Part shown: one piece after another, positions 23,518 through 51,962 of the stretch
How the letters are laid out: each line of letters opens with the position of its first letter
How positions within the stretch are numbered: the first letter of the stretch is position 1
Sequence record: PP438435.1
DNA: 64,000 bases
Strand: one strand, 5' to 3'
Notes under the pieces: generated by a model
The model's database searches: none
Told to the model about the DNA's origin: nothing
The model's input: only the letters and a program-made list of their open reading frames with translations
Program-made: the position numbers and the translations under genes

Positions 23518-24156
23518 TCAGGGGAAGGCGAACCCTGCCAAGCGCGCAGCCAAGGGGCGCGGCTGAGGCTCCGGCTCGACGGTTTGCGGCTCCACAACGA
23601 GTATGGGCTTGCCCAGCAGCCGCGCATCTGGAATGGGTGGCGGCAGCACCGGTCTGGCGTGACCGTGTGCATGGATCTCGGCCCGCACCTGCATCAGCAG
23701 GCGACCCAAGACGTTGCGTCCGACGAGGGTGTTACCGGGGCCAGGACCCGCCCCCCAGAAATCGTCGCGCATCGAAAACTCCACGATGGGCCGATCACTC
23801 GATTCGAGCAGCGCAGCCACGAACGTATCCGGATGCTGCTGCGCCTTCAGGCGCAGCAGCCAGCGCATGCAGTGCACACGCGCGGTCTCCCAGTCAGCAC
23901 GCGTCAGCGCAAGCGCTGAATGCGCGACCTCCTTCGCGGCCATGCCGTTCAGCGCCATCGCGATCCGCGACTGCAAGGCAGGATGCGTTGGCAAACGGCA
24001 TGCCTGATAGAGCGCTTCCGACGATCGCCAAGGCGTGCCGTCGACGACCAGGGGCATGCCGGCTGCCATGTTGCTGAACACCCCGAACGCCTCGCGCGTC
24101 TTGCAGAACACCGCGCAGGCATCCCGTTCATAGCGGCGCATCTCGGGGATCTTCAT
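23518..24156 (-). CDS. NADAR (YbiA-like) family protein
   Basis: FSNM, WRSSEALYQA, LRLKAQQH, IVE...DDFWG, GRNVLGRLLMQVR. Confidence 0.9.
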   Translation of the reverse strand: MKIPEMRRYERDACAVFCKTREAFGVFSNMAAGMPLVVDGTPWRSSEALYQACRLPTHPALQSRIAMALNGMAAKEVAHSALALTRADWETARVHCMRWLLRLKAQQHPDTFVAALLESSDRPIVEFSMRDDFWGAGPGPGNTLVGRNVLGRLLMQVRAEIHAHGHARPVLPPPIPDARLLGKPILVVEPQTVEPEPQPRPLAARLAGFAFP

Positions 24157-24163
24157 TGCCGTG

Positions 24164-24601
24164 CTACATCCCCATCGAGGGCCTTGATGCCGGCGCCCGC
24201 TCCAGCACCCACTCCGAATCCTCTCCGCTGGGCAGATCGACTTCCCGAGCGACTACAGCCTTGCCCACATAGGTCGGCGCGGCCGCGGGGAACAACTCGA
24301 TCAGCCGATCTGCTGCGCGCACATCCCATCGGTCGATCCGCCGGAGGCCTTCGGCCAGCGCCCGCTCGCAGAAATCAACCAACACGGCCTCGCCGACGCT
24401 CCAGCCCCGGCCAGCGTGCGCTCGCGCCTCCACAGCGATGTCCGGGGTCACACGCGACAGCGCCTCCAGAATCCCCGCGGCAGCGTCGGATGCGTTGATC
24501 GTTCCTAACGCCGGCCCGCCGAAGCGCGGATCCAAGGTCCTGATGGCCTCCGTGAACTCTGCCGCTGCTCGCTCCTTGATACGCTCCCACTTGATGGACA
24601 T
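24164..24601 (-). CDS. Hypothetical protein
   Basis: GGAGAGG RBS; ends RPSMGM. Confidence 0.65.
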   Translation of the reverse strand: MSIKWERIKERAAAEFTEAIRTLDPRFGGPALGTINASDAAAGILEALSRVTPDIAVEARAHAGRGWSVGEAVLVDFCERALAEGLRRIDRWDVRAADRLIELFPAAAPTYVGKAVVAREVDLPSGEDSEWVLERAPASRPSMGM

Positions 24602-24618
24602 CTCGCCTCTCCTCGTGG

Positions 24619-24852
24619 TCAGTTGACGTCGCTCGTCTCGGCGACACCGCTGCGCGCGGCAGAGGCTTCCTCAGCGATGCGCATCTCGATGACCTTCGTC
24701 AAGCGGTCACAGCGCGACATGCTGTTCTCGTAGGCATCCGTCGGAATGGCCTCATGTAGAAACGCCGAGTGCATCCTTGCCATCTCCGCGAAGACGCGGA
24801 GCATCGGCGTCGTGTAGCGCTGAACCAATGGATAGCTGCGCGAAGATTGCAT
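24619..24852 (-). CDS. Small hypothetical protein
   Basis: Fills an operon gap. Confidence 0.5.
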   Translation of the reverse strand: MQSSRSYPLVQRYTTPMLRVFAEMARMHSAFLHEAIPTDAYENSMSRCDRLTKVIEMRIAEEASAARSGVAETSDVN

Positions 24853-24858
24853 GGTTGA

Positions 24859-25182
24859 TCACCGAAAGCCGAAAGATGGACACGCTGCGGTTGGCGGGCT
24901 CGGATCAACCCGCTCAACCGGTGGTGCGTGGGTGGGAATGGCGACGCGCTCTCCGCTCCGCAACCGCAAGCACGGCACCGCCGCCATGGCGTCGTAAGCA
25001 AGCTCGATGCCATCGACGTCCTCGCAGGCGCGCGCAGCGCGCGCCAAAGCGCTCTCGACCCGCACGATCCATGCGTCTTCAACAGCGCACGCGCCGCCTT
25101 CGAGTTGTCGCCTCAGCAACAGCACGTGCTCAGTTGCGAGGCTGTGCAGCTCGGGCCGGGCCAAGAGCTCATGGCATCGCAT
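24859..25182 (-). CDS. Small hypothetical protein
   Basis: Starts 4 nt after the hipA stop. Confidence 0.5.
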   Translation of the reverse strand: MRCHELLARPELHSLATEHVLLLRRQLEGGACAVEDAWIVRVESALARAARACEDVDGIELAYDAMAAVPCLRLRSGERVAIPTHAPPVERVDPSPPTAACPSFGFR

Positions 25183-25185
25183 GGC

Positions 25186-26502
25186 TCACGCGCCGGGTGC
25201 AGCGCTGCGCGCCGCTTCCGCCTCACGCAGAGCGCGGAGTGCTCGCTCCGCCGCAGCCAGCGCCATGGCGGGTTCCAGGGACTCCGCGAGGCTCTGAGGA
25301 TCGACCCCGTTCTCGCGAGCAATCTGCGGAAACTCGAGCACCGCTGACAGCACACGCTGCGCGATCTCTGACGCACGCGACTGCTCGATGCCGAAGCTCG
25401 ATGCAGAGCGCACGATCCACGAGGCCGTGAGCGGCGGTTCGTGATCGCCGAGCATCGCGAGCTTGTGGGGTGACGGGCGACCACTGAGATCGAGGTCGGT
25501 CACCATGATGTCGATGTTGGGCGAGAGGGACCAATCGCCGCGCTCATCCTGGATAAACACCCACTGGCCCAGGTGGTCATCGGTGTTGTTGACAGCGCGG
25601 TTCAGAACCATGCGCCCGAAGATCTCCTCGACATCGCGCTCGGGATCCGCCGAATACTGGCGCGCAAACCCCACGAGGTCGGAGTAATCGTTCTTGGGGT
25701 TCTCGATCGCGGCAGCTGCGCTGACGGTGTGCAGGATCGTCGCGCGATCGTCGACATCGAAGCGGCGGCTCAGCAGGATCGAACTGTTGTCCGCGTTGCT
25801 GATCAGCGTCGTGTCCGCCGTGTTCAGTCCTGCGCGTTTGGACACCTCGCAGAGCGACGCTTCGACGCGCGCTTCAGGATAGGTGCCGAGGATGTCGCGC
25901 GGGAACTTCGCGACATAGCACTCGCCCATGTCATCCACATAGGCCGCCTTCGGTTGCGCTCCCCCGTGGGTGGCCAGCGCCCAGCGGTACTTGTCGCGAC
26001 CGAGCGCGAACGGGCAGACCTTCTCGCTGGCGTAGCGACTGATGAACTCGTCGACGCGTCGCTGCAGTGTGCGAAGCGCCTCGAAGGTCTCGACATAGTG
26101 ATCGATGTCAATGTCAGAAGCGTTGAAGCGCAAGCCACCCGACTGCCAGTCGCCCAGCATGAAGAGCTTCTCCGCCGGCGTGGAACGCGCATAGATCGCG
26201 CTATGCGACGCCAGCACGAGCTCACCCCACTGCCCCGGTAGTGCCTGGGCGAATACGGGATGGAGGTCGTCGGCCTGCGGGCCGCGCAGGTTCGGGTTTC
26301 CCTGGGGAAGGTGGACGAACTCGCGCTGCCCCATGCGGTAGTCCAGCGAGGGCGCGAGCGGCGGGCCGTCATAGTCTTCGTGGTAGACGAACACACCCGG
26401 CTTCTGCGGCCGCGGCAGCAGGTACAGGCCGACGGCAACCCAGCGGTTGTCGCCGCCCGGAATCTGACGAAAGACTTCGATGGTGCGTGGGGCGGTGCTC
26501 AT
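25186..26502 (-). CDS. hipA: HipA-family Ser/Thr kinase toxin
   Basis: LPGQWG, GGAQPKA, YVAKFP, LLSRRFD, NTDDH, LSPNID; GGAGG RBS. Confidence 0.88.
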   Translation of the reverse strand: MSTAPRTIEVFRQIPGGDNRWVAVGLYLLPRPQKPGVFVYHEDYDGPPLAPSLDYRMGQREFVHLPQGNPNLRGPQADDLHPVFAQALPGQWGELVLASHSAIYARSTPAEKLFMLGDWQSGGLRFNASDIDIDHYVETFEALRTLQRRVDEFISRYASEKVCPFALGRDKYRWALATHGGAQPKAAYVDDMGECYVAKFPRDILGTYPEARVEASLCEVSKRAGLNTADTTLISNADNSSILLSRRFDVDDRATILHTVSAAAAIENPKNDYSDLVGFARQYSADPERDVEEIFGRMVLNRAVNNTDDHLGQWVFIQDERGDWSLSPNIDIMVTDLDLSGRPSPHKLAMLGDHEPPLTASWIVRSASSFGIEQSRASEIAQRVLSAVLEFPQIARENGVDPQSLAESLEPAMALAAAERALRALREAEAARSAAPGA

Positions 26503-26538
26503 GGATCCCTCCGTGGACGATAAGCAGCGGGTGCGTGA

Positions 26539-26892
26539 TCAGGACGAGGGCGGCGCGCCCGTGCGCTCTTGAACAGCTTGGCGGGACAGGGTGCGGGCGG
26601 TCTCTATGACCAGCACCTCCTGATCCGCCATCAGCTTCAGCGCGTTCGGCAGCACTCCCAAGGCCTGCCAGATCTTGAGGAGCACTTCGAGGTTGACACT
26701 GTTGCCAGCCTCAAGGCGCGCAACAGTGTCGCGATGCACGCCAGCCGCTTCCGCCAACTCCTGCTGGGTCAGCCCCCGCCCCTGCTCCCGAAACTCACGG
26801 ACGTAGCGCCCCAGGTGCTCCAGAGCGGCATTGATCTGGAGCTCAACGGAACGAGCGGCCGTGGTCTTCGTGAGCGGGGGTATGACGGACAT
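26539..26892 (-). CDS. hipB: XRE-family HTH antitoxin (HipB-like)
   Basis: GLTQQELAEAAGVHRDTVARLEAG; directly upstream of hipA. Confidence 0.85.
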   Translation of the reverse strand: MSVIPPLTKTTAARSVELQINAALEHLGRYVREFREQGRGLTQQELAEAAGVHRDTVARLEAGNSVNLEVLLKIWQALGVLPNALKLMADQEVLVIETARTLSRQAVQERTGAPPSS

Positions 26893-27757: not shown

Positions 27758-29992
27758 TTACCGGCCACCGCTCGCCGAAACGCCACCCGACGAGCCCACG
27801 CTTCCCACCGCGCCAGTGGCCTTCCTCGCGGCCCCGCCCACCTGCCCGACACCGCGCTGTGTGGCAGCCCACCAGGCAATTGCCATCGTGCGCGCCTGCT
27901 CGCCCATGTTGCTCTCGCCGAAGGCCTCCATGCGCGCGCCGATGAAGCGCAGAACGCTGTCAGGCACCAGATGGATCAGACTGAAGCTCCAACGCGCCAG
28001 CACCGCGAGAATGGCGCCCGTCAGGAAGATCCACACGACCATGCCAACGATGCCTGGTGCGGTCACGCCCGGGCCTGCCGACGCGCCCGAAAAAATGTGG
28101 AACGCCTTCAGGACAAAGCCGCCCATGAAGTCGAGCACCAGCATGCCGGCCACGAAGCCCGCGATCATCAGCACGGGGCGAGCGACGAGGCTCACCAGCA
28201 GCATGTAGCCGTCCATGGCGCGCTGGCCCGCAAACCCCTCGCCATCGGGTGCGGCGTGCGCCGCGGCCCAGAGAGGCGCCGCCACAACTGCCTGGACCAA
28301 CATCATCAACCACCCTGCCACACCCGCAATCCAGATCAGCAGCGGCAGCGCTGGCACGATGTACGCCATCGTGGCGCCGACAACAAAAATGGGAACGAGC
28401 GCGGAGAACCCCGCCGACAGCAGTGCAAAGCCGCCGACACCCGACAACGCAGACGCGACTACGGACGCAGCTACGACGACCGCCAGCAACCCTGCACTCA
28501 CGACGAGCAGAATGTGACCCCACCGCACAACCCGCGGAATGAGCCCACTGCCGTCATCGAGCGCCGCCTGCATGATCCAGTCGTAGCCCTCACGTGCCGT
28601 TGCCGCCATACGCCGGCCGAGAGCATCAAAAGCGTCCGTCATCGAAGGGCCTGCCATCAGCGCTCCGGTCATTGAGGGCGCTGCCCACATGGCGATCGCC
28701 GAAGTGTCGCCTTCGACGTCCGGGTGCACGTAGGTCGCGGCCGCATCCTCATTGCGCGGAATGATCTGCCTGGCAGCGACGATGTGCGGCACGACGTCCT
28801 GAGCAACAGCAGGAGGCAACTGCCCCGGTGCTGGCTCATCGAACAGCGGCTCCGCATTGATGCTTTCGTTCATCCGCGCATCAAAAGCGGCGAAGGTCAT
28901 ATAGTACGCGCCTGCGACAAGCCAGCCGTTGGCTTCTGCCGTCGCCATCTGTGCCTGTCGAAGCAGGACCTCAGCCCCATTCTTCGCCTGGTTCGCGAGC
29001 AGCGTGCTTCGGCGCATACGCACCAGGTACTCGCCCTCCAAGCTGACCAGTTCACTCCGCACCTGTTCTGCTGACAAGCCGCCCTCCGTACGGGCGGCGA
29101 CGAGATCCCTGACGCGATCCTGTAGATACAGGATCGCTCGACCCTGCTCGCGCAGCGTGAGCTCAGCCGCCTCCCGCTGGAGGACCGACGATGGCTCGAT
29201 GCCCAGGGGCATCTCACGCTGAAGCGTCACGGCGCCACAGAGCGGAACCGCGGATGCGAGATCGCCTTCTCCCGAATACTTCAGAACCCACTTCGCAGTC
29301 CGGGTGCCCTCCCCGCTCCACGGGAACGCACCCGAGCTATCTTCGACGGTCTCGGTGAACCCGGCCGGCGTGGACACTCCAAAGCTCGAAGCAGCCGCGC
29401 CTGACCCGTCGCCCTCAGCACTCTTGCGAACGGCCGCTGCACACGCCTCCAGCTCGTACAGCTTGCTCGCAACGCTAGCGCTGAAGCGTGGCGGCACGGC
29501 AGGCGCGAGCTCCATGCGCTCACTGAGGTAGTTGTTGCTTCGGCTCCACGCCTGATCAGCGAAGCCGCTGCCCTGCATGCCCACCCACAGCACCATGGCC
29601 TGGATGACCGAGTAGCCGCCCAGACTGAGCGGCGTCAGCATGCCCGCCGCAATCGCCACACGCAGCGGCACCCACACCATGGAGTAACGGCCACCCACCT
29701 TGCCATGCTCGCCGGTCTGCATCAGCGCGCTGATGAAGGTCATCAGCACCAGCAGCACGGCAGCAAGGAGCGCTGCCATGTTCACGACGCCGGCAATCGG
29801 CGCCAGGATCGAATCCGAGTTGCGCGCGGTCTCGATGGCGCGGGCCAAGGTCTCCGCATCGACACCGAAGATCCCCTGCACGGCATCACCGCCGCGAACA
29901 CCCTCCATCTGCTGCTGGGCGAGTGCGGCGCCGCTTGCCAGCAGTGCCGAGAGCGACAGCGCGCTGATTCCCCACTTGCGAGTCCAATTCAT
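27758..29992 (-). CDS. dotA: DotA/TraY type IVB secretion membrane protein
   Basis: WVPLRVAIAAGMLTP, YSVIQAMVLWVGMQG, GW..AGAYY, AYIVPALP..IW, APLWAAAH..PDG..RPVLM. Confidence 0.92.
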   Translation of the reverse strand: MNWTRKWGISALSLSALLASGAALAQQQMEGVRGGDAVQGIFGVDAETLARAIETARNSDSILAPIAGVVNMAALLAAVLLVLMTFISALMQTGEHGKVGGRYSMVWVPLRVAIAAGMLTPLSLGGYSVIQAMVLWVGMQGSGFADQAWSRSNNYLSERMELAPAVPPRFSASVASKLYELEACAAAVRKSAEGDGSGAAASSFGVSTPAGFTETVEDSSGAFPWSGEGTRTAKWVLKYSGEGDLASAVPLCGAVTLQREMPLGIEPSSVLQREAAELTLREQGRAILYLQDRVRDLVAARTEGGLSAEQVRSELVSLEGEYLVRMRRSTLLANQAKNGAEVLLRQAQMATAEANGWLVAGAYYMTFAAFDARMNESINAEPLFDEPAPGQLPPAVAQDVVPHIVAARQIIPRNEDAAATYVHPDVEGDTSAIAMWAAPSMTGALMAGPSMTDAFDALGRRMAATAREGYDWIMQAALDDGSGLIPRVVRWGHILLVVSAGLLAVVVAASVVASALSGVGGFALLSAGFSALVPIFVVGATMAYIVPALPLLIWIAGVAGWLMMLVQAVVAAPLWAAAHAAPDGEGFAGQRAMDGYMLLVSLVARPVLMIAGFVAGMLVLDFMGGFVLKAFHIFSGASAGPGVTAPGIVGMVVWIFLTGAILAVLARWSFSLIHLVPDSVLRFIGARMEAFGESNMGEQARTMAIAWWAATQRGVGQVGGAARKATGAVGSVGSSGGVSASGGR

Positions 29993-30004: not shown

Positions 30005-30445
30005 CTAGCCCAGCATCAGCACACCGCGCGACGGCGGGTTACGTTTCGCAAACTCCAGCAGCGCATCCGTGACGCACAGAGCTGCGATCTCAAAAGCAAC
30101 GCCCTTCGGGGCGGCGACAACGCGCTGGCGCATCAGCCCTCCCATGTCGGGCACATTCTCGAAGGTGAAAGGACGGCTCCCGCCGCGGTCGAGCCACGCC
30201 TCCGCATAGACCATCCGCGCCTGCTGCACCAGGATGGGCAACAGTTGGTTCGGAATCAGTGCGAAATCAATCGGCATGTCGAAATCACCGTCTTCGTCGA
30301 GCACGCCATTCGGCGGCGCAATATGTTTCACACCCATGTCGATCAAGAGCCCGCGCAGAAGCGCGATCAACTGATCCACCAGGGCGCCTTCGCGAGGCTC
30401 ACCACGGCTGGGGGCCGCGGGGGGCGTACGAGGTGCGCTCGTCAT
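30005..30445 (-). CDS. IcmS-like small protein
   Basis: LLPILVQQA, GGLMRQRVV and LCVTDALLEF..NPPSR align with recalled IcmS blocks; directly upstream of dotA. Confidence 0.5.
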   Translation of the reverse strand: MTSAPRTPPAAPSRGEPREGALVDQLIALLRGLLIDMGVKHIAPPNGVLDEDGDFDMPIDFALIPNQLLPILVQQARMVYAEAWLDRGGSRPFTFENVPDMGGLMRQRVVAAPKGVAFEIAALCVTDALLEFAKRNPPSRGVLMLG

Positions 30446-31616
30446 CTTCAAACTCCAGTTCGTCGCTGTCCTCGTGCGGCACAGAGACCGCCTCCGGAGA
30501 CAGCCAGGTCCAGTCAGCGTCCGGTTCCAAAACCGTCGCGGGCAGCTCTTCCACGGCCAGCCCGCCCGCATCGTTCGGCGCCGCGCCAGATTCGTCAGAG
30601 GACGCGTGCGCGACCGCCGCCAGGCCCGCCCCATCATCCGTCTCCACCGGCTCTTGGAGCGCATCACGCCGCTCCGCGGGAGCCACCAGCGGCTCGCGCT
30701 CACGCGCTACCGCATCCTCAATCACTTCGGGAACCACGCCTTCAGCGCGACGACGCTCCCAGTAGGCGCGATCCGACGCTGACAGGCCGCAGTCGCTGTC
30801 CGCCTTGGACACCTCAGCCGCAGGTGCCATCTTGGAATCCCCATCGCCCTCGCCGCGCTTGAGCGCCGCACGAAGCCGTGGGGCAAGCTCTGGCATGACC
30901 GCGAAACAGCGCTCGATCAGATCGCCAGGCGGTCCTGCCTCTCCGGCTTCGCCGGCATCGTCCTCGATCACCGCCTCGACCGCGTGCGCGATGCCGGGAA
31001 GCGTCAACGACGGCGGCACATCCGCAAGTGCAGCCTCCCCCAGGGTGGTGAGGCCGCCCGCATCCACAAAGCCGCGCTCAACAGCGCGGATCGCATGATC
31101 GGCGATCGACGACGGACGCCCCAAAGACTCGCGAGCGAGTGCCTCGAAAGCCACCTCTTCAGCATCGAAGTCGAAGAGCTCGGCCTGAACGACACGATCG
31201 CATCCGTCAGCGCCTGAGCGTGCCTCGACGGGGAACTCAGGCCCTGGGCGCCACCACGGCAGATCCCGCGCCCACGCGGGCAGCGCACTGGTGTCAGGCC
31301 GTTCGATCTGCACGGGCACCGCAGCGCGCACATTGGATCGCGCCACGCGATCCAGGAAACGCAGCTCCTCAGACAGCAGATGCTGGGGCACACCCGCGAA
31401 CCCCGGCAGCTCACCCCGCAACACATGCACTGCCTCGTGCGGCTTGCGCGGGCCGATTACGACCGGCTCTGCCACGCTGCCAAGCGCGCCGCGATACAAC
31501 CCCGCGACGCGCGCCACGCCTGCGGCGCCCAGAATCCGGGATGACGTCCGCGGATAGCTGATGTCACCGGCCTCATAGCGGTGCTGGATCGTGGCGGCGG
31601 CGGCAGCTACGCGCAC
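30399..31616 (-). CDS. C-terminal half of a split type IA topoisomerase
   Basis: YEAGDISYPRT catalytic motif, PHEAVH, GRPSS..AVERGFV..LTTLG; GGAGG before GTG. Confidence 0.7.
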   Translation of the reverse strand: MRVAAAAATIQHRYEAGDISYPRTSSRILGAAGVARVAGLYRGALGSVAEPVVIGPRKPHEAVHVLRGELPGFAGVPQHLLSEELRFLDRVARSNVRAAVPVQIERPDTSALPAWARDLPWWRPGPEFPVEARSGADGCDRVVQAELFDFDAEEVAFEALARESLGRPSSIADHAIRAVERGFVDAGGLTTLGEAALADVPPSLTLPGIAHAVEAVIEDDAGEAGEAGPPGDLIERCFAVMPELAPRLRAALKRGEGDGDSKMAPAAEVSKADSDCGLSASDRAYWERRRAEGVVPEVIEDAVAREREPLVAPAERRDALQEPVETDDGAGLAAVAHASSDESGAAPNDAGGLAVEELPATVLEPDADWTWLSPEAVSVPHEDSDELEFEDDERTSYAPRGPQPW

Positions 31617-32395
31617 AGGGCCTCCGCACGTGTTTCAACGCCATCTCCGATGCGCAGCGGAACGGGCCGCCCACACAGCGCCCGCACGAGATCGTTGTAG
31701 TCCCAAGCGGCCTGCGGCCGCAGCCACTCACAGCGGACCGCGGCCAAACCGTGCGCGTTTGCGAGTTCGGACACCCGCTGCTTCCACAGCTCGCGCTCCG
31801 CGGCGGTGTACGCCACTTCCGTGCGCCACGCGGGGCCACCATCCACACTCGCGACCACAAGACGCACCACGCCGACGATCGGCGCCCGCCGGCGAAGACT
31901 CGCCAGCAGCGGCGTCAGAATCCGCCCCGCCGGCGCACCGCGACGGCTGAACGTGTGCCCGATGAGGCGATCCAGGATTCGACGCGCGTCGCCTTGACGA
32001 GCAAGACGCGGGTCCATGGCTTCAGGGGCATCGAGCGCCGCGCGAACGCCCTCGATCGTGATGGATCGAATACGAATGCGCACTACGCTGACGGCCAGGC
32101 CTTGGACAACGCCAGCCACATCCCGGGCGATCACATCTCCTTCGGCGTCGTCGTCCGTCGCCAGCAGCACAGCACGGTCTTTGGCTGCCTCGCGCAGTGC
32201 GCGCTCCGTGCGCGCATCCGCTCGCCGCGACGGCTCCTCGTAACGCGGCGTAATCGCAAGCGGCCACAAGCTCGCCGGCGAACGAAAGAAGTGTCCGCGC
32301 GTGGCCACCACACGCCAACCGTAACCCAGACGACGAAGGATGGCCGTGAGCGTGCTCACCTTGCCAGGCGCCTCGATCACGACCACGCCCTGCAT
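31607..32395 (-). CDS. N-terminal (Toprim) half of a split type IA topoisomerase
   Basis: VIEAPGK, ATRGH, LATDDDAEGDVIA, ARRILDRLIG. Confidence 0.8.
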   Translation of the reverse strand: MQGVVVIEAPGKVSTLTAILRRLGYGWRVVATRGHFFRSPASLWPLAITPRYEEPSRRADARTERALREAAKDRAVLLATDDDAEGDVIARDVAGVVQGLAVSVVRIRIRSITIEGVRAALDAPEAMDPRLARQGDARRILDRLIGHTFSRRGAPAGRILTPLLASLRRRAPIVGVVRLVVASVDGGPAWRTEVAYTAAERELWKQRVSELANAHGLAAVRCEWLRPQAAWDYNDLVRALCGRPVPLRIGDGVETRAEALCA

Positions 32396-32396: not shown

Positions 32397-32987
32397 TCAG
32401 GCGCCCAGCTGAGGCGCCGCAGCGGCGCGGTGCTTGGGAGGATCCAGGTTATCGATCGCGGCGTCGAGCTTGGCCAACACGTCCGTCAGCCCGGGCACAT
32501 CCCTCGGCAGTACGCCGAGCTGCTTCTTGGCGCGCTCCAGTTCGGCCGCGCCCTCGAGCGCCGCCTCAGCGGCGCGTCCCTGGGCCACGCCGTGCTCGTA
32601 GTTGGCGCCCACTGCAGTCAGCATGCGCTCCGCATGCTGACTTACCGCCTCGCCCAGCGCCTTGCGCTGATCCGGCAGTGCCCACATCTCGCCCATCGAC
32701 TTCGCTGCCGCCACACGAACAGGCTCGGGTAGCAGCTCGTTCTTGCGAACCGCCTCAAGCTCGGCCACGGTGCCGGCAGCGTACGGCTGAAGCAGGCCCT
32801 TCAGGTGATCGAAGGCCTGCCGCAGAAGGAACATCGGATTGCCGTCTTCCTCAGCAATCTCCCGCAGCATTCGCTCGCGGCTGCTCTGCGAGACCAAGCC
32901 TCGCAGAGCGACTGCGCGCTGCTCATCCCTGGATCGGCCGAGGCTACGTGCCAACGGCATCTCCGGCGTCAGGTTCATTCCATTCAT
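32397..32987 (-). CDS. Hypothetical helical protein
   Basis: GGAG RBS; in the tra operon; ends APQLGA. Confidence 0.7.
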   Translation of the reverse strand: MNGMNLTPEMPLARSLGRSRDEQRAVALRGLVSQSSRERMLREIAEEDGNPMFLLRQAFDHLKGLLQPYAAGTVAELEAVRKNELLPEPVRVAAAKSMGEMWALPDQRKALGEAVSQHAERMLTAVGANYEHGVAQGRAAEAALEGAAELERAKKQLGVLPRDVPGLTDVLAKLDAAIDNLDPPKHRAAAAPQLGA

Positions 32988-33009: not shown

Positions 33010-34098
33010 TCAGTCCTGCCGTATCACGCGCGCATGTTCGGCCTGAAGCTGCCGACTGCGCTCATTGAGGCCCTGGTTGGCGATCATTGCCAACAGCAGC
33101 GTCTGTTCCTGCTCGATCTGAAGGCGTTCGGTATCCACCCAGAGCTGGGCCGACATCGTCAGCTGCATCTCGCGCAGCAGACCCGCCTCCGTCTTGGCCG
33201 CCAGCTCGATCGGGCGCTCACTCGACTCGATGCCGTCGATTGCCCACTGTTTGACGGTTGCCAGATAGCTACGTTCGCCCTCGCCTTGCGCGACACGCAT
33301 GGCCGCATGGCGCGCCACGATCTCAGCAGGCAAGGCCGCCGACGCGCGGTAGAGCTCCGCCTTCGCCTCGTACTCGGTGAGCGCCGCCGTGCTGCCACCG
33401 CTGGACGGGGCGCGAGGAACGGGCTCGGGCGTCAGAGCCAGCGAGATCGCGTCGCGGACGCGCTCGGCCTCTTCCACCGGGATTGTGTCTCGCATCAAGT
33501 AGTCCGGCTTCAGTGCGTCCTGCGTGCCGTTGTACTTGGCCAGCGTGGCGCGGAGATTGGCCATCGATCCGGCATAGCTGCCATAGCCCGCAGCATTGGT
33601 CGCGATCGCACGCTGTGATTCCTGGAAGCTGCGATCGCGCACGCGGCTCTGAGCCTGCAGCCGACGCGCATCTGACGTCCGGCGGCACGCGGACGGGGCG
33701 TTCGCTCCCACGGTCACCGTCTGCCCGTTGACCTGCATGGTCATCAAGGTGCCGAAGGTGCGGTTGTAGATAGCCTCTTCCGCAGCCGCGGTCTGCTGGG
33801 CGATGGTCTCGACCATCACGCCGGCATGCTGCTGCAGCGCCTGCTGGGTGCCCAGGGTATTTGCCGCCACCTGCTCGACCACGGCGCCATCGCCCTTCTC
33901 GACGACGATCGACTGCATGACTTGCTCTGCAAGCCACTGCTGCATGATCGGCCAGAATCCCGTGAACCAAGCAATCCACGCAGCAGCATCGCCGCCCGTC
34001 GCTCGCGCCACCGGCGCGGCGGCAACGCCTACACCGAGCACGACTCCCAGAAGGATGCTGGACGCTTTGCCTGCAAAGGTGTTCCGAATCGACATCAC
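33010..34098 (-). CDS. TraW/IcmX-like exported conjugation protein
   Basis: Signal peptide; C-terminal LLREMQLTMSAQLW..E..EQTLLLA pattern; tra context. Confidence 0.55.
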   Translation of the reverse strand: MMSIRNTFAGKASSILLGVVLGVGVAAAPVARATGGDAAAWIAWFTGFWPIMQQWLAEQVMQSIVVEKGDGAVVEQVAANTLGTQQALQQHAGVMVETIAQQTAAAEEAIYNRTFGTLMTMQVNGQTVTVGANAPSACRRTSDARRLQAQSRVRDRSFQESQRAIATNAAGYGSYAGSMANLRATLAKYNGTQDALKPDYLMRDTIPVEEAERVRDAISLALTPEPVPRAPSSGGSTAALTEYEAKAELYRASAALPAEIVARHAAMRVAQGEGERSYLATVKQWAIDGIESSERPIELAAKTEAGLLREMQLTMSAQLWVDTERLQIEQEQTLLLAMIANQGLNERSRQLQAEHARVIRQD

Positions 34099-34532
34099 AC
34101 GCCCTCCGTACTCGGCCGCGCACCCTGCCGCGACTCAAGCGCAAATCGATCAGAGGCCTCGCGCGCCAGCTGGTGGACGTCCTCGGGCGTGTGCGCATCC
34201 GTGATCGCGTCGAGCACGACTTGACAGAGCGCATCGCCGCTGATCGACCCGATGATGCGGCGGATCGCGCTGCCAATGCCGGCACCGATGCGCCCGAATC
34301 CGCCCATGTTGATGGTTCGCGCCAGGCAGCCCAGGTTGTACTTGCGCAGCGCCGGCGTGATCGCGCGACGCACATTCTGCGTACTGAGGGCCCCCATCCG
34401 ATCAGCGATGGAGTTGCCCGCCTGACTGACGACGCAGTCCTCCTGGGAGGCCTGAGCCAGGGCACCGGTGCTGAAGACGAGCGCGGCACAGGCGAGTGCA
34501 ATGGCGAGAAACTGTTTGATCCGATCGAACAT
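34095..34532 (-). CDS. Small exported protein with three mature-region Cys
   Basis: Signal peptide ending ALA-Q; coupled to the traW-like gene. Confidence 0.65.
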   Translation of the reverse strand: MFDRIKQFLAIALACAALVFSTGALAQASQEDCVVSQAGNSIADRMGALSTQNVRRAITPALRKYNLGCLARTINMGGFGRIGAGIGSAIRRIIGSISGDALCQVVLDAITDAHTPEDVHQLAREASDRFALESRQGARPSTEGV

Positions 34533-34543: not shown

Positions 34544-34972
34544 TTACATCGACGGGGACACACGGACGACTTCACGCGTCCGGTAGATGATGCGCGTCAG
34601 CGCGAACACGGCACGCAGAAACCCCGCCCGCCCTGCGACCAGCGCGGCCAGAACGGAGCCCGGCCGAACCGCAGCCTCGACGTCCGCCAACCAGTTCTCG
34701 TCGTAGCGCTCGACGGCGCCAAAGAGGCGCAGCGACTCCGGTGCAGGAAGCAGAGCGAACACGCGCGCCGTCAGCCTCGGGTTGCGACGCAAACGCTGCA
34801 TGATCTCCCCGTCGTGCCGCTCGACAGAGGCCAGCAGACGCGCGTACAGACGCTGACCATTCACTGACAGCGGCGGGATCCAGCCCTCGGCTTCCTGGAG
34901 CGCGTTCGCGACCAGGCCCACCTCGATGGAGCCGTCAAAGATCGATCTCTGGAGAGCCAGGGCGTGCCGCAT
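34544..34972 (-). CDS. IcmW-like protein
   Basis: LQEAEGW, ESLRLFGAVER and FLRAVFALTRII resemble recalled IcmW blocks; divergent from dotL. Confidence 0.55.
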   Translation of the reverse strand: MRHALALQRSIFDGSIEVGLVANALQEAEGWIPPLSVNGQRLYARLLASVERHDGEIMQRLRRNPRLTARVFALLPAPESLRLFGAVERYDENWLADVEAAVRPGSVLAALVAGRAGFLRAVFALTRIIYRTREVVRVSPSM

Positions 34973-35115: not shown

Positions 35116-37680
35116 ATGGCAAACCGGCCCAAGGGTGTACGTCAGCGCGACGAAGCGCTGCTTCGCAACGTCCGGCGAGATCCCCGACGCTTCTCGCAGC
35201 AGATTGCTGACATCTGGCGCACGCCGGAGGGCGCCGCGATCACGCTCTTTCTGGTCGCAGCCCTGCTCTTCCTCCAGCCGGCTGCGGTCTATCTGCTGCC
35301 GCTGTTCCTGCTGTTCCTGCTTCCGCTGCACTTCAGCGAACGCAGGCACCGCCACTTGCCGATGCGATTGCCGATCGAAGCCGGGATCGTTGACTACAAC
35401 GATCCAAAGCCGCAGCACGCGGGCTTTGCCAAGGCGCGCGGCATGGTGCTCATCGGCAACAGCACAGACGACAACGGCGAAGAGCTCTGGAGCTCGCGCT
35501 CGGACGAGCTCACCCACTCGCTCACCATCGGCGCTACCGGCGCGGGCAAGTCCGTCATGCTGGTCGGCAACAGCGCCAACTACCTCGCCTTCGGTGGCGG
35601 CCTGATCTACTCGGATGCGAAGGCGTCGCCGAGTCTCTATTGGGACATCGCCACCATCGCGTTCCGCATGGGGCGCGAAGACGACCTGCAGACCATCAAC
35701 TACATGACCGGCAACCGGACGATCTCCGGCATCAGTGCCTCCCGGTCGTCGAACACGACCAACCCCTTCGTCGGCGGGAGCGCCGACAGCTGGATCCAGA
35801 CGCTGTCCTCGCTGATCAAAGAGCCCGACGGCCAGAACGCTGTGTTCGGCGAGCGGGCGCTCGCCATGGTCTCCGCGCTGCTCTACGGCATGCACGCGCT
35901 CAATTCCGAAGGCCATTGCGACATCGGAGTCGGCACCATCCGCGATCACCTGCCCATCGAAGCCTTCGAGCAGCTCGCCTACGACCCTCGCATCGAAGGA
36001 CGGCCGTCGGCGGTTCTCGCCATGCGCAGCTACCTGAAGTCACTGCCGGGGTATAAGCCCCCGGCGGAGCGGATCAAGAAAGACCGCAGCGGCGTTGTCA
36101 TCACAGGCCCAGACGGCAAGCCAGTCCTCGAAGGCCATGCCGAACAGGTCTACAACCAACATGGCTTCGCGCAGATGTACTTCACGCGCGCAATGTCATC
36201 GCTCACCGATACCTACGGCCACATCTACGCGGGCAATCTCCCAGAGGTCGACTACGTCGATACCGTGCGCCGCCGGCGCATCCTCGTGATCATGCTGCCG
36301 GCGCTTGAGAAGTCCCTCGCCGAGATCTCGAACCTCGGCAAGATCAACCTCGCAGCGCTGCGCGACGCGGTGAGCACAGGCCTCGGCAGCGGACTGGAAG
36401 GCCACAAAGCGGGTGTGCTGGACAATCTGCCCACCGACAGTCCGATCGCTACGCGAATCATCCTCGACGAAGCGGGCTACCAGATGGTGGAAGGCTTCGC
36501 CATCCTCGCAGCCCAGGCCCGCGGTCTGGGCTTCTCCGTCGAATGGGCCGGACAGGACTGGGCTGGCATCAAGCGCGGCTCCGAGAAAGAAGCGGAGCAA
36601 ATCTGGTCGAACACGACCATGAAGCGCTTCGGCAGGCTGGAGGATGCAGAGACCTTCCAGAAGCTGCAGACGCAGACGGGCGAAGCGCTGATCGCCCAGG
36701 CCCGAGGCTACGCCTACGATGCCGATGGCATCTCGAGCTACAGGGACACTGGCGATGTCGGCTTGGAGAAGCGTCAGCGTGTGGATTTCAACGACCTCCA
36801 GCAGCAGGTCGAGGGTGAGTTCCACATCGCCTGGCGCGGCCGCTTGATCCGTGGTGTGGCGTTTGCGGCACTGCTGCCATCGATCAAGACCCTGCAGATC
36901 AACCGCTACCTGCGCGTCGGTGAGCGCAATCTCAAGCTGTTGGATGACACCCCACCGTCAGACGCAGCATCCGACCGCGGCGGCAAGAGCGGTGGCGGCA
37001 TGGCGGCGACCCCCACCCGCCCCGCTGCCGGTGCAATGCCGGCCCGGTCCACACCGCCAACCGATGAGGGCTCTGGCGACGCCCCGACGGAACCACGCGC
37101 CCCAATGCGCCCGCGGCCCGGCCGTACTTCACAGGCTGCTGCTGCGGCCGCGCTTACGCCGCGCCTCGACACGCCGCCCGCAGCCCGTCCCGACACCGCT
37201 TCTGCTACCGCACGCACCGGTGAGCGCATCGACGACCTGGAAGCACTGCTGGCCATGGACGCCAACGCGGACTTCAGCGGCGACTCGGCGCCTGGCGATC
37301 GCCTTGCCGGCAATGCGCCCGGCGCGGCGTCCGACCACGGACTGGACGACCTGCTGGGTCTCCCGAGCTGGAGCACGGCCCCCACCACGCCGGCGGACGT
37401 CCTCGAATCGGACAGTGGCGCACCGGCAGAGCTCCAGATCGAGGACATGCCCGACGTGATCGATCTGCGCACCCTGCTCGGCGAAGGCAGCGCTGGCGAG
37501 GCGTTGGTCCACGACCACGTCCAAGCGGCCCTCGACAGCTACCCCGATCGCGAGACCCTGGCTGCCGCCAACGAGCTCGACCCGAACGAGATCGTGGCCG
37601 ACCTCGAGGCCGCGATGAAATATCTGCTCGACGGCGATCCGCCCCACGACGACGAGTCCATCGGAGGACCCTTCGGATGA
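35116..37680 (+). CDS. dotL: Type IV coupling protein DotL/IcmO/TrbC
   Basis: N-terminal TM, HSLTIGATGAGKS, YSDAKA, ILDEAGY, LPALEKS, QARGLGF; long C-terminal extension. Confidence 0.92.
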   Translation: MANRPKGVRQRDEALLRNVRRDPRRFSQQIADIWRTPEGAAITLFLVAALLFLQPAAVYLLPLFLLFLLPLHFSERRHRHLPMRLPIEAGIVDYNDPKPQHAGFAKARGMVLIGNSTDDNGEELWSSRSDELTHSLTIGATGAGKSVMLVGNSANYLAFGGGLIYSDAKASPSLYWDIATIAFRMGREDDLQTINYMTGNRTISGISASRSSNTTNPFVGGSADSWIQTLSSLIKEPDGQNAVFGERALAMVSALLYGMHALNSEGHCDIGVGTIRDHLPIEAFEQLAYDPRIEGRPSAVLAMRSYLKSLPGYKPPAERIKKDRSGVVITGPDGKPVLEGHAEQVYNQHGFAQMYFTRAMSSLTDTYGHIYAGNLPEVDYVDTVRRRRILVIMLPALEKSLAEISNLGKINLAALRDAVSTGLGSGLEGHKAGVLDNLPTDSPIATRIILDEAGYQMVEGFAILAAQARGLGFSVEWAGQDWAGIKRGSEKEAEQIWSNTTMKRFGRLEDAETFQKLQTQTGEALIAQARGYAYDADGISSYRDTGDVGLEKRQRVDFNDLQQQVEGEFHIAWRGRLIRGVAFAALLPSIKTLQINRYLRVGERNLKLLDDTPPSDAASDRGGKSGGGMAATPTRPAAGAMPARSTPPTDEGSGDAPTEPRAPMRPRPGRTSQAAAAAALTPRLDTPPAARPDTASATARTGERIDDLEALLAMDANADFSGDSAPGDRLAGNAPGAASDHGLDDLLGLPSWSTAPTTPADVLESDSGAPAELQIEDMPDVIDLRTLLGEGSAGEALVHDHVQAALDSYPDRETLAAANELDPNEIVADLEAAMKYLLDGDPPHDDESIGGPFG

Positions 37681-38240
37681 ACAACGTTCGCTTTCTCTGC
37701 ACGCTGCTGGCGCTCAGCGCACTGGCCCCAGCACTCGCGGCCGCGACCGCGACGGCGCCCAAACGCCTTGCCGGCCTCGACAACCCAGAGCACATCCAGT
37801 GCGCGCGGACGGCAGCACGCACCTTCCGCGTGCCGTTCGCGGCCGTACTGATCCTGCTCGATGTCGAACGCGGCTGGGCCGGCGCCGAGCAGCCGAACCG
37901 GAATGATGACGGCGAAGTTGTGAGCTACGACTTGGGCCCGATGCAGATCAACGACCGGGCCTGGCTCAGCACGTTCGAGTCCGCCGGCATCACCCGTGAT
38001 CAGCTGAGGGACGACGCCTGCATCAACATCCACGCCGGCGTCTGGATCTTCGGCCGCCACCTGCATGACATCCGAGCAGAGCACGCCGCGCTCGCCCCGG
38101 AGGAGCGCGCCACGCGCAACCCTGCTGAGGTGGAAGCGGTGCTTCGTTACCACTCACGCACGCCCAAGTACCAAGAGCGCTACCTGGAGCATGTGCGCAA
38201 AGCCGTCGACCGCGGCCTGCGCGCAGTAGCGCAGCAGTGA
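37677..38240 (+). CDS. Lytic transglycosylase (SLT family)
   Basis: ILLDVERG (catalytic Glu), LGPMQIN, CINIHAG, YHS; signal peptide. Confidence 0.88.
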   Translation: MNNVRFLCTLLALSALAPALAAATATAPKRLAGLDNPEHIQCARTAARTFRVPFAAVLILLDVERGWAGAEQPNRNDDGEVVSYDLGPMQINDRAWLSTFESAGITRDQLRDDACINIHAGVWIFGRHLHDIRAEHAALAPEERATRNPAEVEAVLRYHSRTPKYQERYLEHVRKAVDRGLRAVAQQ

Positions 38241-38275
38241 TCGACCCGCCCACCCCCATCGACAAGGACCGTCCC

Positions 38276-39358
38276 ATGCCTCTTCGACGCACCTACTCAC
38301 TGGCGCCGCTGTGTGCGACCCTGGCGCTCGCTTGGGGCGCCCCTGCGGGCGCCCAGAGCGCAACGCTGCGCTTCGCCAACAGCTCGCATCCCGACATCCC
38401 GCTGCTCAGCAGCGCGGATCTCGTGCTGCGCAGCAGCGGCAACTACGAAGGCCGCTGCGTGCTGGCCAGCGGCACCACGCGCTGCCAGGGCACCACAGGT
38501 GGAGGGTCGACCGGCCCGCTGCCGACCGCTAGCCTCAGCGCGCCGAGTAGCGCGACGACCGGCACAGCGATCAACATCACCCGCTCCACCGGCAATAGCC
38601 CCGAGCTCTGTGTCGCCTCCAGCTCGCCCGCCTCTGGCGTGAGTGGCTGGAGCGGCGCCGTCGGCCCGGGTGCCGGCACCACCCCCGTCACCTTCAACAG
38701 CACCGGCACCGGCACCTACAGCCTCAGCATGCGCTGCTACAACGCCAACGGTGGCACCACCAGCAACAGCCTCAGCATCACCGTCACCCAAGGTGGCGGC
38801 ACGCCCGGAAACTGCTCGATCAGTCATCCGCAGATCAGGCCGCAGGGCCTGGTCGAGTATGCGATGACCTGGAACCAGGTCTTCGAGCGCGCCTACCCCA
38901 ACGCTCCGGGGTATCTCATCCCGCTGGGCAGCTTCACACCCGAGCGATCCATGAATGGGCCGCTCTCCGCGAAGATGTACCTTTCGATCTCGTTCGTGGC
39001 CCAGGCCGGCGTGCGGGGCAACATCGCGTTTGCAGGATCCCAACCTATTGCCGCCGTGGGATACACCGAGTACCGCCCCGGTGATGCGTTCGTAACCATC
39101 TCCCCGTGCGCAGGCGACTTCCGGCCGCCCGATCTTCAGTCCTCGGATATGTTCGTGCGGAACTGCCGCAGAACAGTTGAAGAAGGCACCCTGTTCTTCG
39201 GGAACTCGCCAACGCCCAGCTCGTCGTACTGCCAGCTAACGCCCGGCCAGACCTACTACCTCAACGTCGTCATGGCGCCGCCGGGATCCGTCAACGGCTT
39301 CACCAACAGTTGTCGCAACGGCATACCGCGCTGCGAGGTCAACGCGCAGCCGCGCTGA
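38276..39358 (+). CDS. Exported Cys-rich protein with Ig-like Ser/Thr/Gly-rich domain
   Basis: Signal peptide; ASLSAPS...WSG...YSLSMRCYN...SLSITV; paired cysteines. Confidence 0.7.
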   Translation: MPLRRTYSLAPLCATLALAWGAPAGAQSATLRFANSSHPDIPLLSSADLVLRSSGNYEGRCVLASGTTRCQGTTGGGSTGPLPTASLSAPSSATTGTAINITRSTGNSPELCVASSSPASGVSGWSGAVGPGAGTTPVTFNSTGTGTYSLSMRCYNANGGTTSNSLSITVTQGGGTPGNCSISHPQIRPQGLVEYAMTWNQVFERAYPNAPGYLIPLGSFTPERSMNGPLSAKMYLSISFVAQAGVRGNIAFAGSQPIAAVGYTEYRPGDAFVTISPCAGDFRPPDLQSSDMFVRNCRRTVEEGTLFFGNSPTPSSSYCQLTPGQTYYLNVVMAPPGSVNGFTNSCRNGIPRCEVNAQPR

Positions 39359-41372: not shown

Positions 41373-42635
41373 TCACATGCAGTAAAACGTGTGGGCCCGC
41401 TGCCCAACCGGCAGCCCCTGCAGGGGCTGTAGCGTCGTCCATGCGTTATAGGGCACGGGCGTGGTCTGCTGCACACGGAACAGTCCTGGCGGCTTGCGCA
41501 TCTCCCTGAACCAATAGCACGACTGGGTTTGACTGTTGAAGCGCCCCTCCACCCACTCCGTCTGACACGTCTCCGAATGCACCGTGGATGAGTTGATCAC
41601 GATGTTCTGCCCATCCGTACGTTTCTGCACTTGCTGGGGAAAGAAGTTGGATGCGGCGTGTCCGTTCTGCCGATCGCACTGCCAGTCCATGAGATCGTAG
41701 TTGCCCATCTCATAGTTCGTGAAAGGAACATACGAAAGCGCTACGCCCTCGACCCCTGTGGAGATGACGCCAATGTCCGTGGCGCAGATGGGGATGGGAA
41801 CCTTGAGAGAAGGCACATCCAGGCCGAAATCATGGCCAAGGTAGTGCGTGATGTCTGGCGTCGTGTTGCACTGAGAGCGACCCAGGGGATTCGGGCCCAT
41901 GCCACACACCAAGCCAGTGCCACTGACGATGCCGCAGCTCCTGTTGGTGCCTCCGCCCCCGGGGCCTGGTCCACTGCTCCCGGGCCGGACGTACTCGGGC
42001 CACCCCACGAGCTCCACGGCGACGGGCATCGTGGGCGCCACATTGCCGAAGTACACGTTCAGCACCTGCGTAAAGGCGCCGGCCACACCGCGAACGGTCA
42101 TCGTGGAGGCCTGAACATAGCCAGCAAAGCCCTTCGTGGACTTCAGGATCTCATCCGCTACGCGAGCCTTGTAGCCTTGCAAGCTCGTTGCATTCACCTG
42201 ATAGCCGGCACGCCGCACCAGCGCATCAGTCGGTGCGCGGCCGAAGTCCGCGACGACCAACCGCGCAACATTCGTGGCATCTTTGATCGCGAACGCGCGA
42301 TAGGTCTCTCCGATCGGCGAAGCACCCGCAGTGCCACCGCGCACCGCGAAGGTGTTGGGCAGATGCCCCGCCGTGACCAGCTGCGCCGTGGTGATCTCCT
42401 GGCGGGCCCCGACGGTCCACGACGCCTTGTTCGCTTCCGCGAACTTCTGCGCCGCCTCACCGAAGATCGCCATCTCGCGCGCCTGCAGCGTCACGTAAGT
42501 GTTGGCCGCTTCGTTCGCTTGCCGCTGCCGCACCTGCGAGAACGTGATCGCGGCCACAACACCGGCGATCACAAGGACGACCAGCATCTCCAGCAGGGTA
42601 AAGCCCCGCGACGTATTCCAATTGCGTCCGTTCAT
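41373..42635 (-). CDS. pilV: PilV-like type IV pilus tip adhesin
   Basis: Prepilin motif RG/FTLLEML, shufflon-N-like constant region, Cys-rich C-terminus. Confidence 0.75.
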   Translation of the reverse strand: MNGRNWNTSRGFTLLEMLVVLVIAGVVAAITFSQVRQRQANEAANTYVTLQAREMAIFGEAAQKFAEANKASWTVGARQEITTAQLVTAGHLPNTFAVRGGTAGASPIGETYRAFAIKDATNVARLVVADFGRAPTDALVRRAGYQVNATSLQGYKARVADEILKSTKGFAGYVQASTMTVRGVAGAFTQVLNVYFGNVAPTMPVAVELVGWPEYVRPGSSGPGPGGGGTNRSCGIVSGTGLVCGMGPNPLGRSQCNTTPDITHYLGHDFGLDVPSLKVPIPICATDIGVISTGVEGVALSYVPFTNYEMGNYDLMDWQCDRQNGHAASNFFPQQVQKRTDGQNIVINSSTVHSETCQTEWVEGRFNSQTQSCYWFREMRKPPGLFRVQQTTPVPYNAWTTLQPLQGLPVGQRAHTFYCM

Positions 42636-42660
42636 GGTTCTCTCCAGAGTTGCCCGGCGC

Positions 42661-43911
42661 TCACTGCACCTTGTCTTTCGCCGCGTCCTTCTCATTCGGC
42701 GACAGCTCGTTGAGGAAGGTGTCGACATCCCTCTGTGCTTTCGCCGCCTGCTCGATCTTCCGCTGCTGCTCATTGATGGCGCCGGTGAGCTGCTCGAAAT
42801 TGCCGGAGCGGATGATGCTCGCAACGCTGCTGTAGCCGCCTCGCGAAAACAGCATCTCGCCCTCAGCGACTCGCTTGCCGCCAACGCGCACCAGCCTCTG
42901 ATTGGCAACTACGCGGATCGCACCGCTGACCATCTCGCGCGCCACCTCCGACCCGAAAACCTGCCCCGCCCAGCCGCACAGACGACGGATCGTCGTTTCG
43001 ATGTCGATCGCGTGCATCGTCGTGATCACGAGGTGACCGACCGACGCGTTGATGACCTCCGCGGCGGTCTCCTGATCCCGGATCTCACCGACCATCAGAA
43101 TCGAAGGCACGCCCGTGGGGTAAGCGCGCATCTGTGCGCGCAACGGCAGCAGGAACTGCTGATCACGCGGCAGCGACTCGTCCACGGGGATCTGGAAGCA
43201 CACGCCCCGGTTCCAGCTGTTCTGCAGGGGGAACTCGAGCGGCGCTTCGATCGTACGAGCCACGCCACCAAAGCGCTCCAGGCGCTCGCGGATCATGCCG
43301 GCAATCGTCGTGCTCTTGCCCGACCCAGGCTTGGCCGCAAGGATGACCAGGCCACCCTCGACGCCCAAGGTGCGAGAGAGCAGGATGTCTTTCCACATCA
43401 GCGGCAGCGTCAGATCGGACAGCCGCGGCACCTGGGTCGACACACGACGCAGGCAGAGCTGTTTGCGAGTTGCCGTCAGGTCGCGGTGCACACGATAGAC
43501 GTAGTGCCGACCCTCGAACTCGAAGTCGACATTGAAGTCGTGGTGCTTGCGCGCTTCCTCCATTGAGCCATCGGTACGAATGAACTTGCGCAACTGAAAC
43601 ACGAAGTCCTCGAGGCCGCTTCCCGCCACCGGCAGAGCGTAGTCCCTGCCCGCGAACGCCATGGCATGGTCGAGATCTTCCGCGTCATCGGTGTCCCAGA
43701 GGTAGAAGTCGGTGACGCTGTCGATGTTGTCCATGCTGAGCACATCCACGCCCACCGCGGTGACGATTCCTGCCCCCGAGGGCGCCGTCGCCACAGGCGC
43801 GGGCATCGGCGTTGGAACGGCCCCCTGAGCTGCGGGCGTGGGCGCTGCGAACGCAGGCGCCGGGCGCGGAACACCGGGAGCTGGCGTGGGCGTGGGCGTG
43901 GGCGTGCTCAT
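42661..43911 (-). CDS. PilT/PilU-like secretion ATPase
   Basis: AKPGSGKSTT, TIEAPLEF, ILMVGEIRD, GHLVITTMH. Confidence 0.8.
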   Translation of the reverse strand: MSTPTPTPTPAPGVPRPAPAFAAPTPAAQGAVPTPMPAPVATAPSGAGIVTAVGVDVLSMDNIDSVTDFYLWDTDDAEDLDHAMAFAGRDYALPVAGSGLEDFVFQLRKFIRTDGSMEEARKHHDFNVDFEFEGRHYVYRVHRDLTATRKQLCLRRVSTQVPRLSDLTLPLMWKDILLSRTLGVEGGLVILAAKPGSGKSTTIAGMIRERLERFGGVARTIEAPLEFPLQNSWNRGVCFQIPVDESLPRDQQFLLPLRAQMRAYPTGVPSILMVGEIRDQETAAEVINASVGHLVITTMHAIDIETTIRRLCGWAGQVFGSEVAREMVSGAIRVVANQRLVRVGGKRVAEGEMLFSRGGYSSVASIIRSGNFEQLTGAINEQQRKIEQAAKAQRDVDTFLNELSPNEKDAAKDKVQ

Positions 43912-45139: not shown

Positions 45140-45171
45140 CGTCAGTTCCCTTGCTGGGTTGCGGTCTTGTA

Positions 45172-51961: not shown

Positions 51962-51962
51962 C

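Follow-up and report, generated by a model that had tools for sequence, protein, structure and literature searches.

A small acidic protein encoded on an I-type conjugative element is, at the level of its predicted fold, a remote homologue of Legionella IcmS. The stretch of DNA that we analysed, referred to here as the window, comprises 64 kb and is identical to positions 144986..208985 of GenBank record PP438435.1; coordinates are those of the window unless the record is named. The gene lies at 30005..30445 (-), immediately upstream of dotA/traY, and is annotated in GenBank as encoding a hypothetical protein. The assignment follows from the agreement of two results, a fold match of the predicted structure found with Foldseek and a sequence match of a 17-sequence family profile.

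The IcmS-like protein and its family

The open reading frame of the IcmS-like protein spans 146 codons, giving 146 aa as called, with a conserved core of about 124 aa. The three sequence blocks that a preliminary description of this DNA had likened to IcmS are all present in the translation between residues 68 and 140: LLPILVQQA at 68–76, GGLMRQRVVA at 102–111 and, for the third, LCVTDALLEF at 123–132 with NPPSR at 136–140. The GC content of the three codon positions is 0.71/0.45/0.74, as in the adjoining genes, and the frame is conserved in 16 relatives whose identity ranges from 90% down to 24%. It is therefore a real coding frame. The plus-strand ORFs that overlap the same interval have codon-position GC patterns differing from those of the neighbouring genes.

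The first 22 codons of the ORF as called overlap the upstream gene and have an atypical codon-position GC, and the corresponding residues have pLDDT values below 50 in the predicted model and are missing from several relatives. The start is uncertain, and an alternative GTG at codon 23 (30379) would give a protein of 124 aa, a core close in length to IcmS chains (110–115 residues). The isoelectric point is 5.1 for the protein as called, 4.8 for the core and 4.0–5.8 across the family. Neither a signal peptide nor a transmembrane segment was seen in the sequence, and the protein is small, acidic and predicted to be a cytoplasmic α/β protein.

We built an AlphaFold2 (AF2) model of the protein on six close homologues. 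One of the five models is confident, with a mean pLDDT of 73, a pTM of 0.67 and values of 80–90 for the core helices and strands, whereas the other four reach a pLDDT of 55–60. A structural comparison with IcmS had been set beforehand as a check on the resemblance. Searching the PDB with Foldseek yields IcmS chains for all of the top five matches (5xnb, 5x90 and 5x1e), with E values from 6.5e-5 to 5e-4. The TM-scores by target, which refer to the whole of IcmS, range from 0.73 to 0.77, with rmsd values of 2.6–2.9 over 121–129 aligned columns, and the identity of the protein to IcmS is 18–20%. Only IcmS chains appear below an E value of 0.001, and the sixth match follows at 0.17. The matched chains all come from crystal structures of DotL-IcmS-IcmW(-LvgA) complexes. 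No viral structural match to the model was found in BFVD.

The family profile, made from the IcmS-like protein and its 16 relatives, leads to the same protein. Searched against PDB sequences, it returns IcmS in the top four positions with an E value of 0.0035 (20.5 bits), a marginal but specific match: nothing other than IcmS lies below 0.01, and the next match, to an unrelated protein, has an E value of 0.49. Positions 47–125 of the profile align with IcmS residues 26–103, covering 79 of 133 profile positions. The HMMER alignment falls on the three blocks picked out earlier, which are also the most conserved blocks of the family, and the nearly invariant family residue Cys124 aligns with a cysteine of IcmS. 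The fold and profile tests share no information, and both pick IcmS from among approximately 175,000 PDB sequences. The resemblance to IcmS put forward in the preliminary description is thus borne out by the top five structural and the top four profile matches.

Searches of all PDB sequences with phmmer, starting from the single sequence, and with a 6-sequence profile found nothing. Neither the protein (at E values up to 0.1) nor any of its 16 relatives was matched in Pfam and NCBIfam, libraries that may hold no IcmS model, and no curated model would name the protein IcmS.

Searching 1.84 billion cluster representatives exhaustively with an HMM recovered 13 clusters of the family at 50% identity. 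The relatives stem from one Gemmatimonadales MAG and several metagenome contigs. When 5.8 billion proteins were searched by word index, the 17-sequence profile returned the same family alone, without any named IcmS. No relative was found among the GTDB species representatives, scanned with patterns of the close homologues, nor was one encoded on any of 72,556 PLSDB plasmids searched with tblastn, and megablast of the IcmS-like region against plasmids found nothing. Upstream of distant DotA genes (Undibacterium, Paracoccaceae and gammaproteobacterial MAGs; loci L013–L019) no IcmS-like ORF was detected. The same holds for the Pseudomonas MPF_I plasmid pLWPZF, in which the operon upstream of dotA is absent. 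No second IcmS-like gene was found in the 64-kb window or in the rest of PP438435.1. The family is small and confined to one clade of I-type conjugative elements.

The dotA operon and the conjugative element

Eight closely packed genes on the minus strand make up the operon; the IcmS-like gene is the seventh of them and dotA/traY the last. The operon opens with a gene for a 142-aa basic, predicted all-helical protein (34544..34972 (-)), followed by one for a 145-aa protein (34095..34532 (-)), which is probably exported because its translation begins with a signal-peptide-like N-terminal segment and whose position is conserved in relatives. The third gene encodes a 361-aa protein with a conserved place in the operon (33010..34098 (-)), and the fourth a poorly conserved helical protein of 196 aa (32397..32987 (-)); neither product received a family assignment. 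We considered the 196-aa protein as a candidate DotN and dropped it in view of these properties. Next comes a 262-aa Toprim-domain protein corresponding to the N-terminal part of topoisomerase IA (31607..32395 (-); PF01751, 1.9e-6; topA_bact, 1.8e-18). The sixth gene (30399..31616 (-)) encodes a 405-aa protein that, over its first ~100 residues, resembles type IA topoisomerases around their active site (profile against PDB, topoisomerase I, E 1e-7; weak Topoisom_bac match), whereas its remaining part received no assignment. At its 3' end, this gene overlaps the IcmS-like ORF at the start as called. Only 12 nt separate the stop of the IcmS-like ORF from the start of the eighth gene, which encodes a DotA/TraY family membrane protein of 744 aa (27758..29992 (-); TIGR04346, 4e-91), so that the adjacency to dotA described earlier holds; the position of this gene is kept in all relatives. 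The eleven genes around the IcmS-like ORF are all annotated as hypothetical proteins in GenBank.

The order of coupling protein, ~142-aa, ~145-aa, ~360-aa, ~200-aa, Toprim, topoisomerase-like, IcmS-like and DotA genes is maintained, together with the gene sizes, wherever a relative has sufficient flanking DNA, at identities as low as ~30%. The tight or overlapping junctions of the IcmS-like gene with the 405-aa gene and with dotA are likewise kept. The Toprim and the 405-aa topoisomerase-like genes are separate ORFs in every relative (loci L005–L011). Judging by their sequences, the two may make up a mini-topoisomerase-like enzyme that is split in a conserved manner and encoded in the transfer operon. 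The window encodes a full-length topoisomerase III as well, at 11017..13164. Downstream of dotA, genes for a HipB-like HTH protein (26539..26892) and a HipA_C kinase (25186..26502) lie within 23518..26892 (-), and this HipBA pair keeps its place after dotA in all relatives. A NADAR-family protein encoded after the pair matches the anti-phage model NF053876 (1.7e-56).

The remaining transfer genes are spread along the same molecule. A type IVB (thin) pilus cluster (41373..54520 (-)) encodes prepilin-like proteins, PilT/U- and PilQ-type ATPases, a PilR-like platform protein, PilO, the PilN secretin and a TcpQ-like protein. The two secretion ATPases of the cluster, of which one is PilT/U-like and the other PilB/GspE-like, are encoded at 42661..44532 and 47761..49785 (-). 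The three prepilin-like genes have long N-terminal extensions in their maximal ORFs, and their true starts are probably further downstream. The window further encodes an IcmT/TraK-like small membrane protein (55887..56198 (-); PF28014 IcmT_2 on the called 100-aa product), a DotB/TraJ ATPase (56182..57405 (-); TIGR02524, 3e-80), a DotC/TraI-like lipoprotein in two ORFs of 199 and 84 aa (57331..58178 (-); PF16932 on both), a DotD/TraH-like lipoprotein (58180..58665 (-); PF16816), a MobQ-family relaxase (59401..60669 (-); NF041496, 4e-69, above the cut-off) and a ParM-like protein. The DotC/TraI-like gene looks like one frameshift or a genuine two-ORF arrangement, which was seen in an independent Logan assembly; the longest ORF of the window reads differently in the 5' part. 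In the rest of PP438435.1 we found DotI, DotH, a TrbI-like protein and a 1024-aa ORF in the TraU position. Since a MobQ relaxase, a DotL-type coupling protein, I-type type IV secretion system (T4SS) genes and a type IVB pilus occur together on one molecule, the element is, by its gene content, an I-type (MPF_I) conjugative element, as had been claimed.

The record itself bears the title 'Dolichospermum phage Dfl-JY45, complete genome' (208,985 bp). Capsid, terminase, portal and tail proteins are missing from the annotation of the 226 CDS, and the record encodes ParB and ParM-like proteins. The GC content of the window is ~65%, and an independent assembly is continuous across the junction of the record's end and start. 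Given this GC content, the lack of annotated phage structural genes, the full conjugation apparatus and the junction that is read through, PP438435.1 looks like a conjugative megaplasmid or ICE, belonging to a high-GC heterotroph in the cyanobacterial culture, and not like a cyanophage. Giant ORFs of 1185–2387 aa at PP438435.1 50977..78123 and 86907..90608 contain LPD1, four ART-PolyVal domains and a DUF3584 over its full length, together with a weak match to Helicase_C. Giant polyvalent proteins are typical of large conjugative elements, and those encoded here are possible protein cargo.

The coupling protein and the proposed adaptor role

Divergent from the operon, the window encodes a DotL/TrbC-family type IV coupling protein of 854 aa (35116..37680 (+); 6sz9_A, 2.7e-109; NF041447, 8e-84; PF12696). 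In one relative (locus L010) the coupling-protein gene instead lies upstream of the operon on the same strand. The sole PDB match of this protein is IcmO(DotL), 6sz9_A, with residues 7–601 aligning to DotL residues 4–590. Residues 602–854 (253 aa; 36919..37677 (+)) form a C-terminal extension located where DotL has its own. In alignments of orthologues, a linker rich in Pro and Ala leads into a conserved acidic module of ~80 aa with a pI of 4.05. The terminal module is present in five of five orthologues examined and in every relative whose sequence reaches the coupling protein. Comparing the tail and its terminal module with PDB sequences detected no similarity to the DotL tail. The module and the IcmS-like protein are both acidic, and any contact between them would therefore be mainly hydrophobic.

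The coupling-protein gene is followed by one for a lytic transglycosylase (TrbN/SLT-like; 37677..38240 (+)). After the transglycosylase, a gene at 38237..39358 (+) encodes a 373-aa Cys-rich protein with a signal-like N-terminus, conserved in relatives, for which no family assignment was found. We considered DotM/TrbA for this product and dropped it, as the protein is Cys-rich and looks exported.

Legionella IcmS works as a heterodimer with IcmW, and the first gene of the operon (34544..34972) had been proposed to encode an IcmW-like partner. This proposal found no support in the analysis. The 142-aa product is strongly basic, with a pI of 10.9, and only its close homologues were found. Searches against the PDB with the single sequence and with 7- and 9-sequence profiles, at E values up to 10, returned no IcmW from a set that contained IcmW chains; matches of the 9-sequence profile to protein A are an artefact of summed repeats. 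The AF2 model of the product is poor (pLDDT 59.7) and all helical, and its best Foldseek match (E 1.7) is unrelated, a fold test that is weak at this model quality. Charge, profile searches and Foldseek on the poor model all argue against IcmW, and we rejected the candidate. By these sequence and fold tests of the 34544..34972 product, no IcmW-like gene was found, and a counterpart of LvgA was not detected beside the IcmS-like protein.

We lean towards a reading in which the IcmS-like protein serves the coupling complex as its adaptor or chaperone, docking on the tail of the coupling protein and presenting protein substrates. In such a scheme, the eight-gene operon would supply the IcmS-like protein as a component of the coupling-protein apparatus in this clade of I-type elements. 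The protein would bind the long C-terminal extension of the DotL-family coupling protein, as IcmS does in Legionella, and the conserved acidic ~80-aa module at the end of the tail is the candidate docking site. From there it may hand proteins over to the channel while transfer proceeds. The relaxase, the split Toprim/topoisomerase-like pair and the giant polyvalent proteins with LPD1 and four ART-PolyVal domains would be among the candidate cargo. Both the docking on the tail and the presentation of substrates are proposed by analogy with the Legionella coupling complex. With regard to the adaptor interpretation as it was originally drawn, the IcmS fold, the adjacency to dotA, the conjugative element and the DotL-type coupling protein all stood, whereas the IcmW-like gene at 34544..34972 was not supported.

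Other explanations of the same protein have to be weighed against this reading. The IcmS-like protein could be the dedicated chaperone of one neighbouring product, namely the 405-aa topoisomerase-like protein, the Toprim protein or DotA/TraY, holding its client in a soluble or unfolded state within the donor, in the manner of small acidic secretion chaperones whose genes adjoin those of their clients. Its small size and acidic character are in line with this idea, as are the tight or overlapping junctions with the 405-aa gene and dotA that are kept in relatives. Moreover, a description of IcmS itself as a chaperone exists (PMC13664640), and the basic 142-aa operon protein (pI 10.9) would be another possible client. 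However, the whole operon is tightly packed, so adjacency singles out no client. Its structural relatives are exclusively IcmS chains from structures that include the DotL tail, and the gene is invariably accompanied by a DotL-type coupling protein that has the conserved tail module. We therefore consider a purely dedicated chaperone unlikely, while noting that the roles of dedicated chaperone and coupling-protein adaptor are compatible with each other.

Somewhat less probable still is that the resemblance to IcmS reflects convergence on a simple α/β fold, or an artefact of a shallow model, and that the protein has an accessory or regulatory part in the transfer operon without being related to IcmS. 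Such an outcome would be consistent with a pLDDT of 73 and four poor models out of five, with the 18–20% identity, with a profile match that is marginal at an E value of 0.0035 (20.5 bits) and with the lack of a family-model match. It is harder to reconcile with two unconnected methods choosing the same protein from ~175,000 PDB sequences with nothing else near. The aligned blocks are the most conserved of the family, and the type IVB secretion system (T4BSS) setting, beside dotA and a DotL-type coupling protein, is the context expected of an IcmS homologue. A chance ORF in DNA of 65% GC would be no gene at all. High-GC DNA is indeed rich in spurious ORFs, and the called start overlaps the upstream gene, but the codon-position GC of a real gene, conservation down to 24% identity at a fixed syntenic place and a compact predicted fold make this explanation extremely improbable and effectively refute it.

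Comparison with known type IVB systems

If the IcmS-like protein is indeed an adaptor of the coupling complex, part of a substrate-recognition apparatus exists in DNA-transfer systems, which bears on the evolution of effector translocation. One reconstruction places the gain of IcmS and IcmW in the last common ancestor of the Legionellales and ties it to the move into eukaryotic hosts (PMC8896642), and both are reported to be absent from the plasmid-borne T4BSS of Yersinia pseudotuberculosis (PMC13664640). The preliminary description had placed the two proteins outside the canonical IncI1 Tra set. Two studies treat them as absent from T4BSSs outside the Legionellales or as gained within that order (PMC8896642, PMC13664640), and descriptions of I-type conjugative plasmids have them lacking there. 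An IcmS-fold protein in a conjugative clade of unrelated, free-living high-GC bacteria would change both the view of a gain in the Legionellales and that of an absence from plasmids. In the literature that we searched, 'IcmS-like', 'IcmS homolog' or similar terms are not applied to any bacterial protein, and PP438435.1 is not mentioned. The case described here is that of an IcmS-fold protein, apparently without IcmW, which is a constant member of the dotA operon in a conjugative clade that lies outside the Legionellales.

A more far-reaching possibility, which we put forward tentatively and hold to be somewhat doubtful, is that IcmS-type adaptors are, or derive from, a component of the I-type conjugation clade and were not invented by the host-adapted Legionellales. 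An IcmS-fold protein on the coupling-protein tail would then recruit proteins that pass into recipient bacteria with the DNA. Candidates for such recruitment would be the giant LPD1/ART-PolyVal proteins and the split Toprim/topoisomerase-IA-like enzyme, which may be covalently linked to DNA. An ancestral conjugative component fits the data equally well as the 'retained' recognition machinery of the preliminary description. Were the conjugative origin true, effector recognition would have a concrete path along which it evolved out of DNA transfer, and conjugation its first adaptor devoted to the co-transfer of proteins. An IcmS-fold protein in the transfer operon would in addition suggest a mechanism by which proteins such as primases, anti-defence and polyvalent proteins, long suspected of being co-transferred during conjugation, are passed on.

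The system described here is reminiscent of that of Legionella in several respects. The IcmS-like protein shares with IcmS its predicted fold, the three blocks in the same order including the cysteine, a similar core length and a small, acidic character; IcmS and IcmW have been described as small acidic cytoplasmic proteins (PMC8896642). Both are encoded in a T4BSS-type cluster with a DotL-family coupling protein that carries a C-terminal extension. However, the identity between the two amounts to only 18–20%, and the protein lacks a match to curated models and detected counterparts of IcmW and LvgA. Here, the gene lies directly upstream of dotA/traY, on a relaxase-bearing conjugative element outside the Legionellales. 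In Legionella, the gene order follows an icmT-S-R-Q-type arrangement.

When comparing the element with the conjugative plasmids R64 (IncI1) and pCTX-M3 (IncM), there is a broad correspondence in the transfer apparatus. It comprises TraY/DotA, TrbC/DotL, TraJ/DotB, TraH/DotD, TraI/DotC, TraK/IcmT, TraM/DotI and TraN/DotH, together with a TraO-like protein and a type IVB thin pilus. Whereas the element described here encodes an IcmS-like protein, no counterpart of IcmS or IcmW has been described in these plasmids, and its relaxase is of the MobQ family. To our knowledge, R64 has neither IcmS nor IcmW. For pCTX-M3, no IcmS or IcmW counterpart is named, and other components of the coupling subcomplex are called still uncharacterised (PMC6112013).

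Outside the Legionellales, an adaptor gene is annotated in the kib T4BSS of Pseudomonas putida IsoF, namely icmW (PMC9519443, PMC13664640). This gene is a precedent for adaptor homologues outside the host-adapted Legionellales. The two systems differ in the adaptor concerned: icmW is annotated in kib and icmS goes unmentioned there, whereas the element described here encodes a protein with a predicted IcmS fold and IcmW was not found. They also differ in their setting, as the kib system delivers a toxic effector in interbacterial killing, whereas the IcmS-like gene is accompanied by relaxase, partition and pilus genes typical of conjugation.
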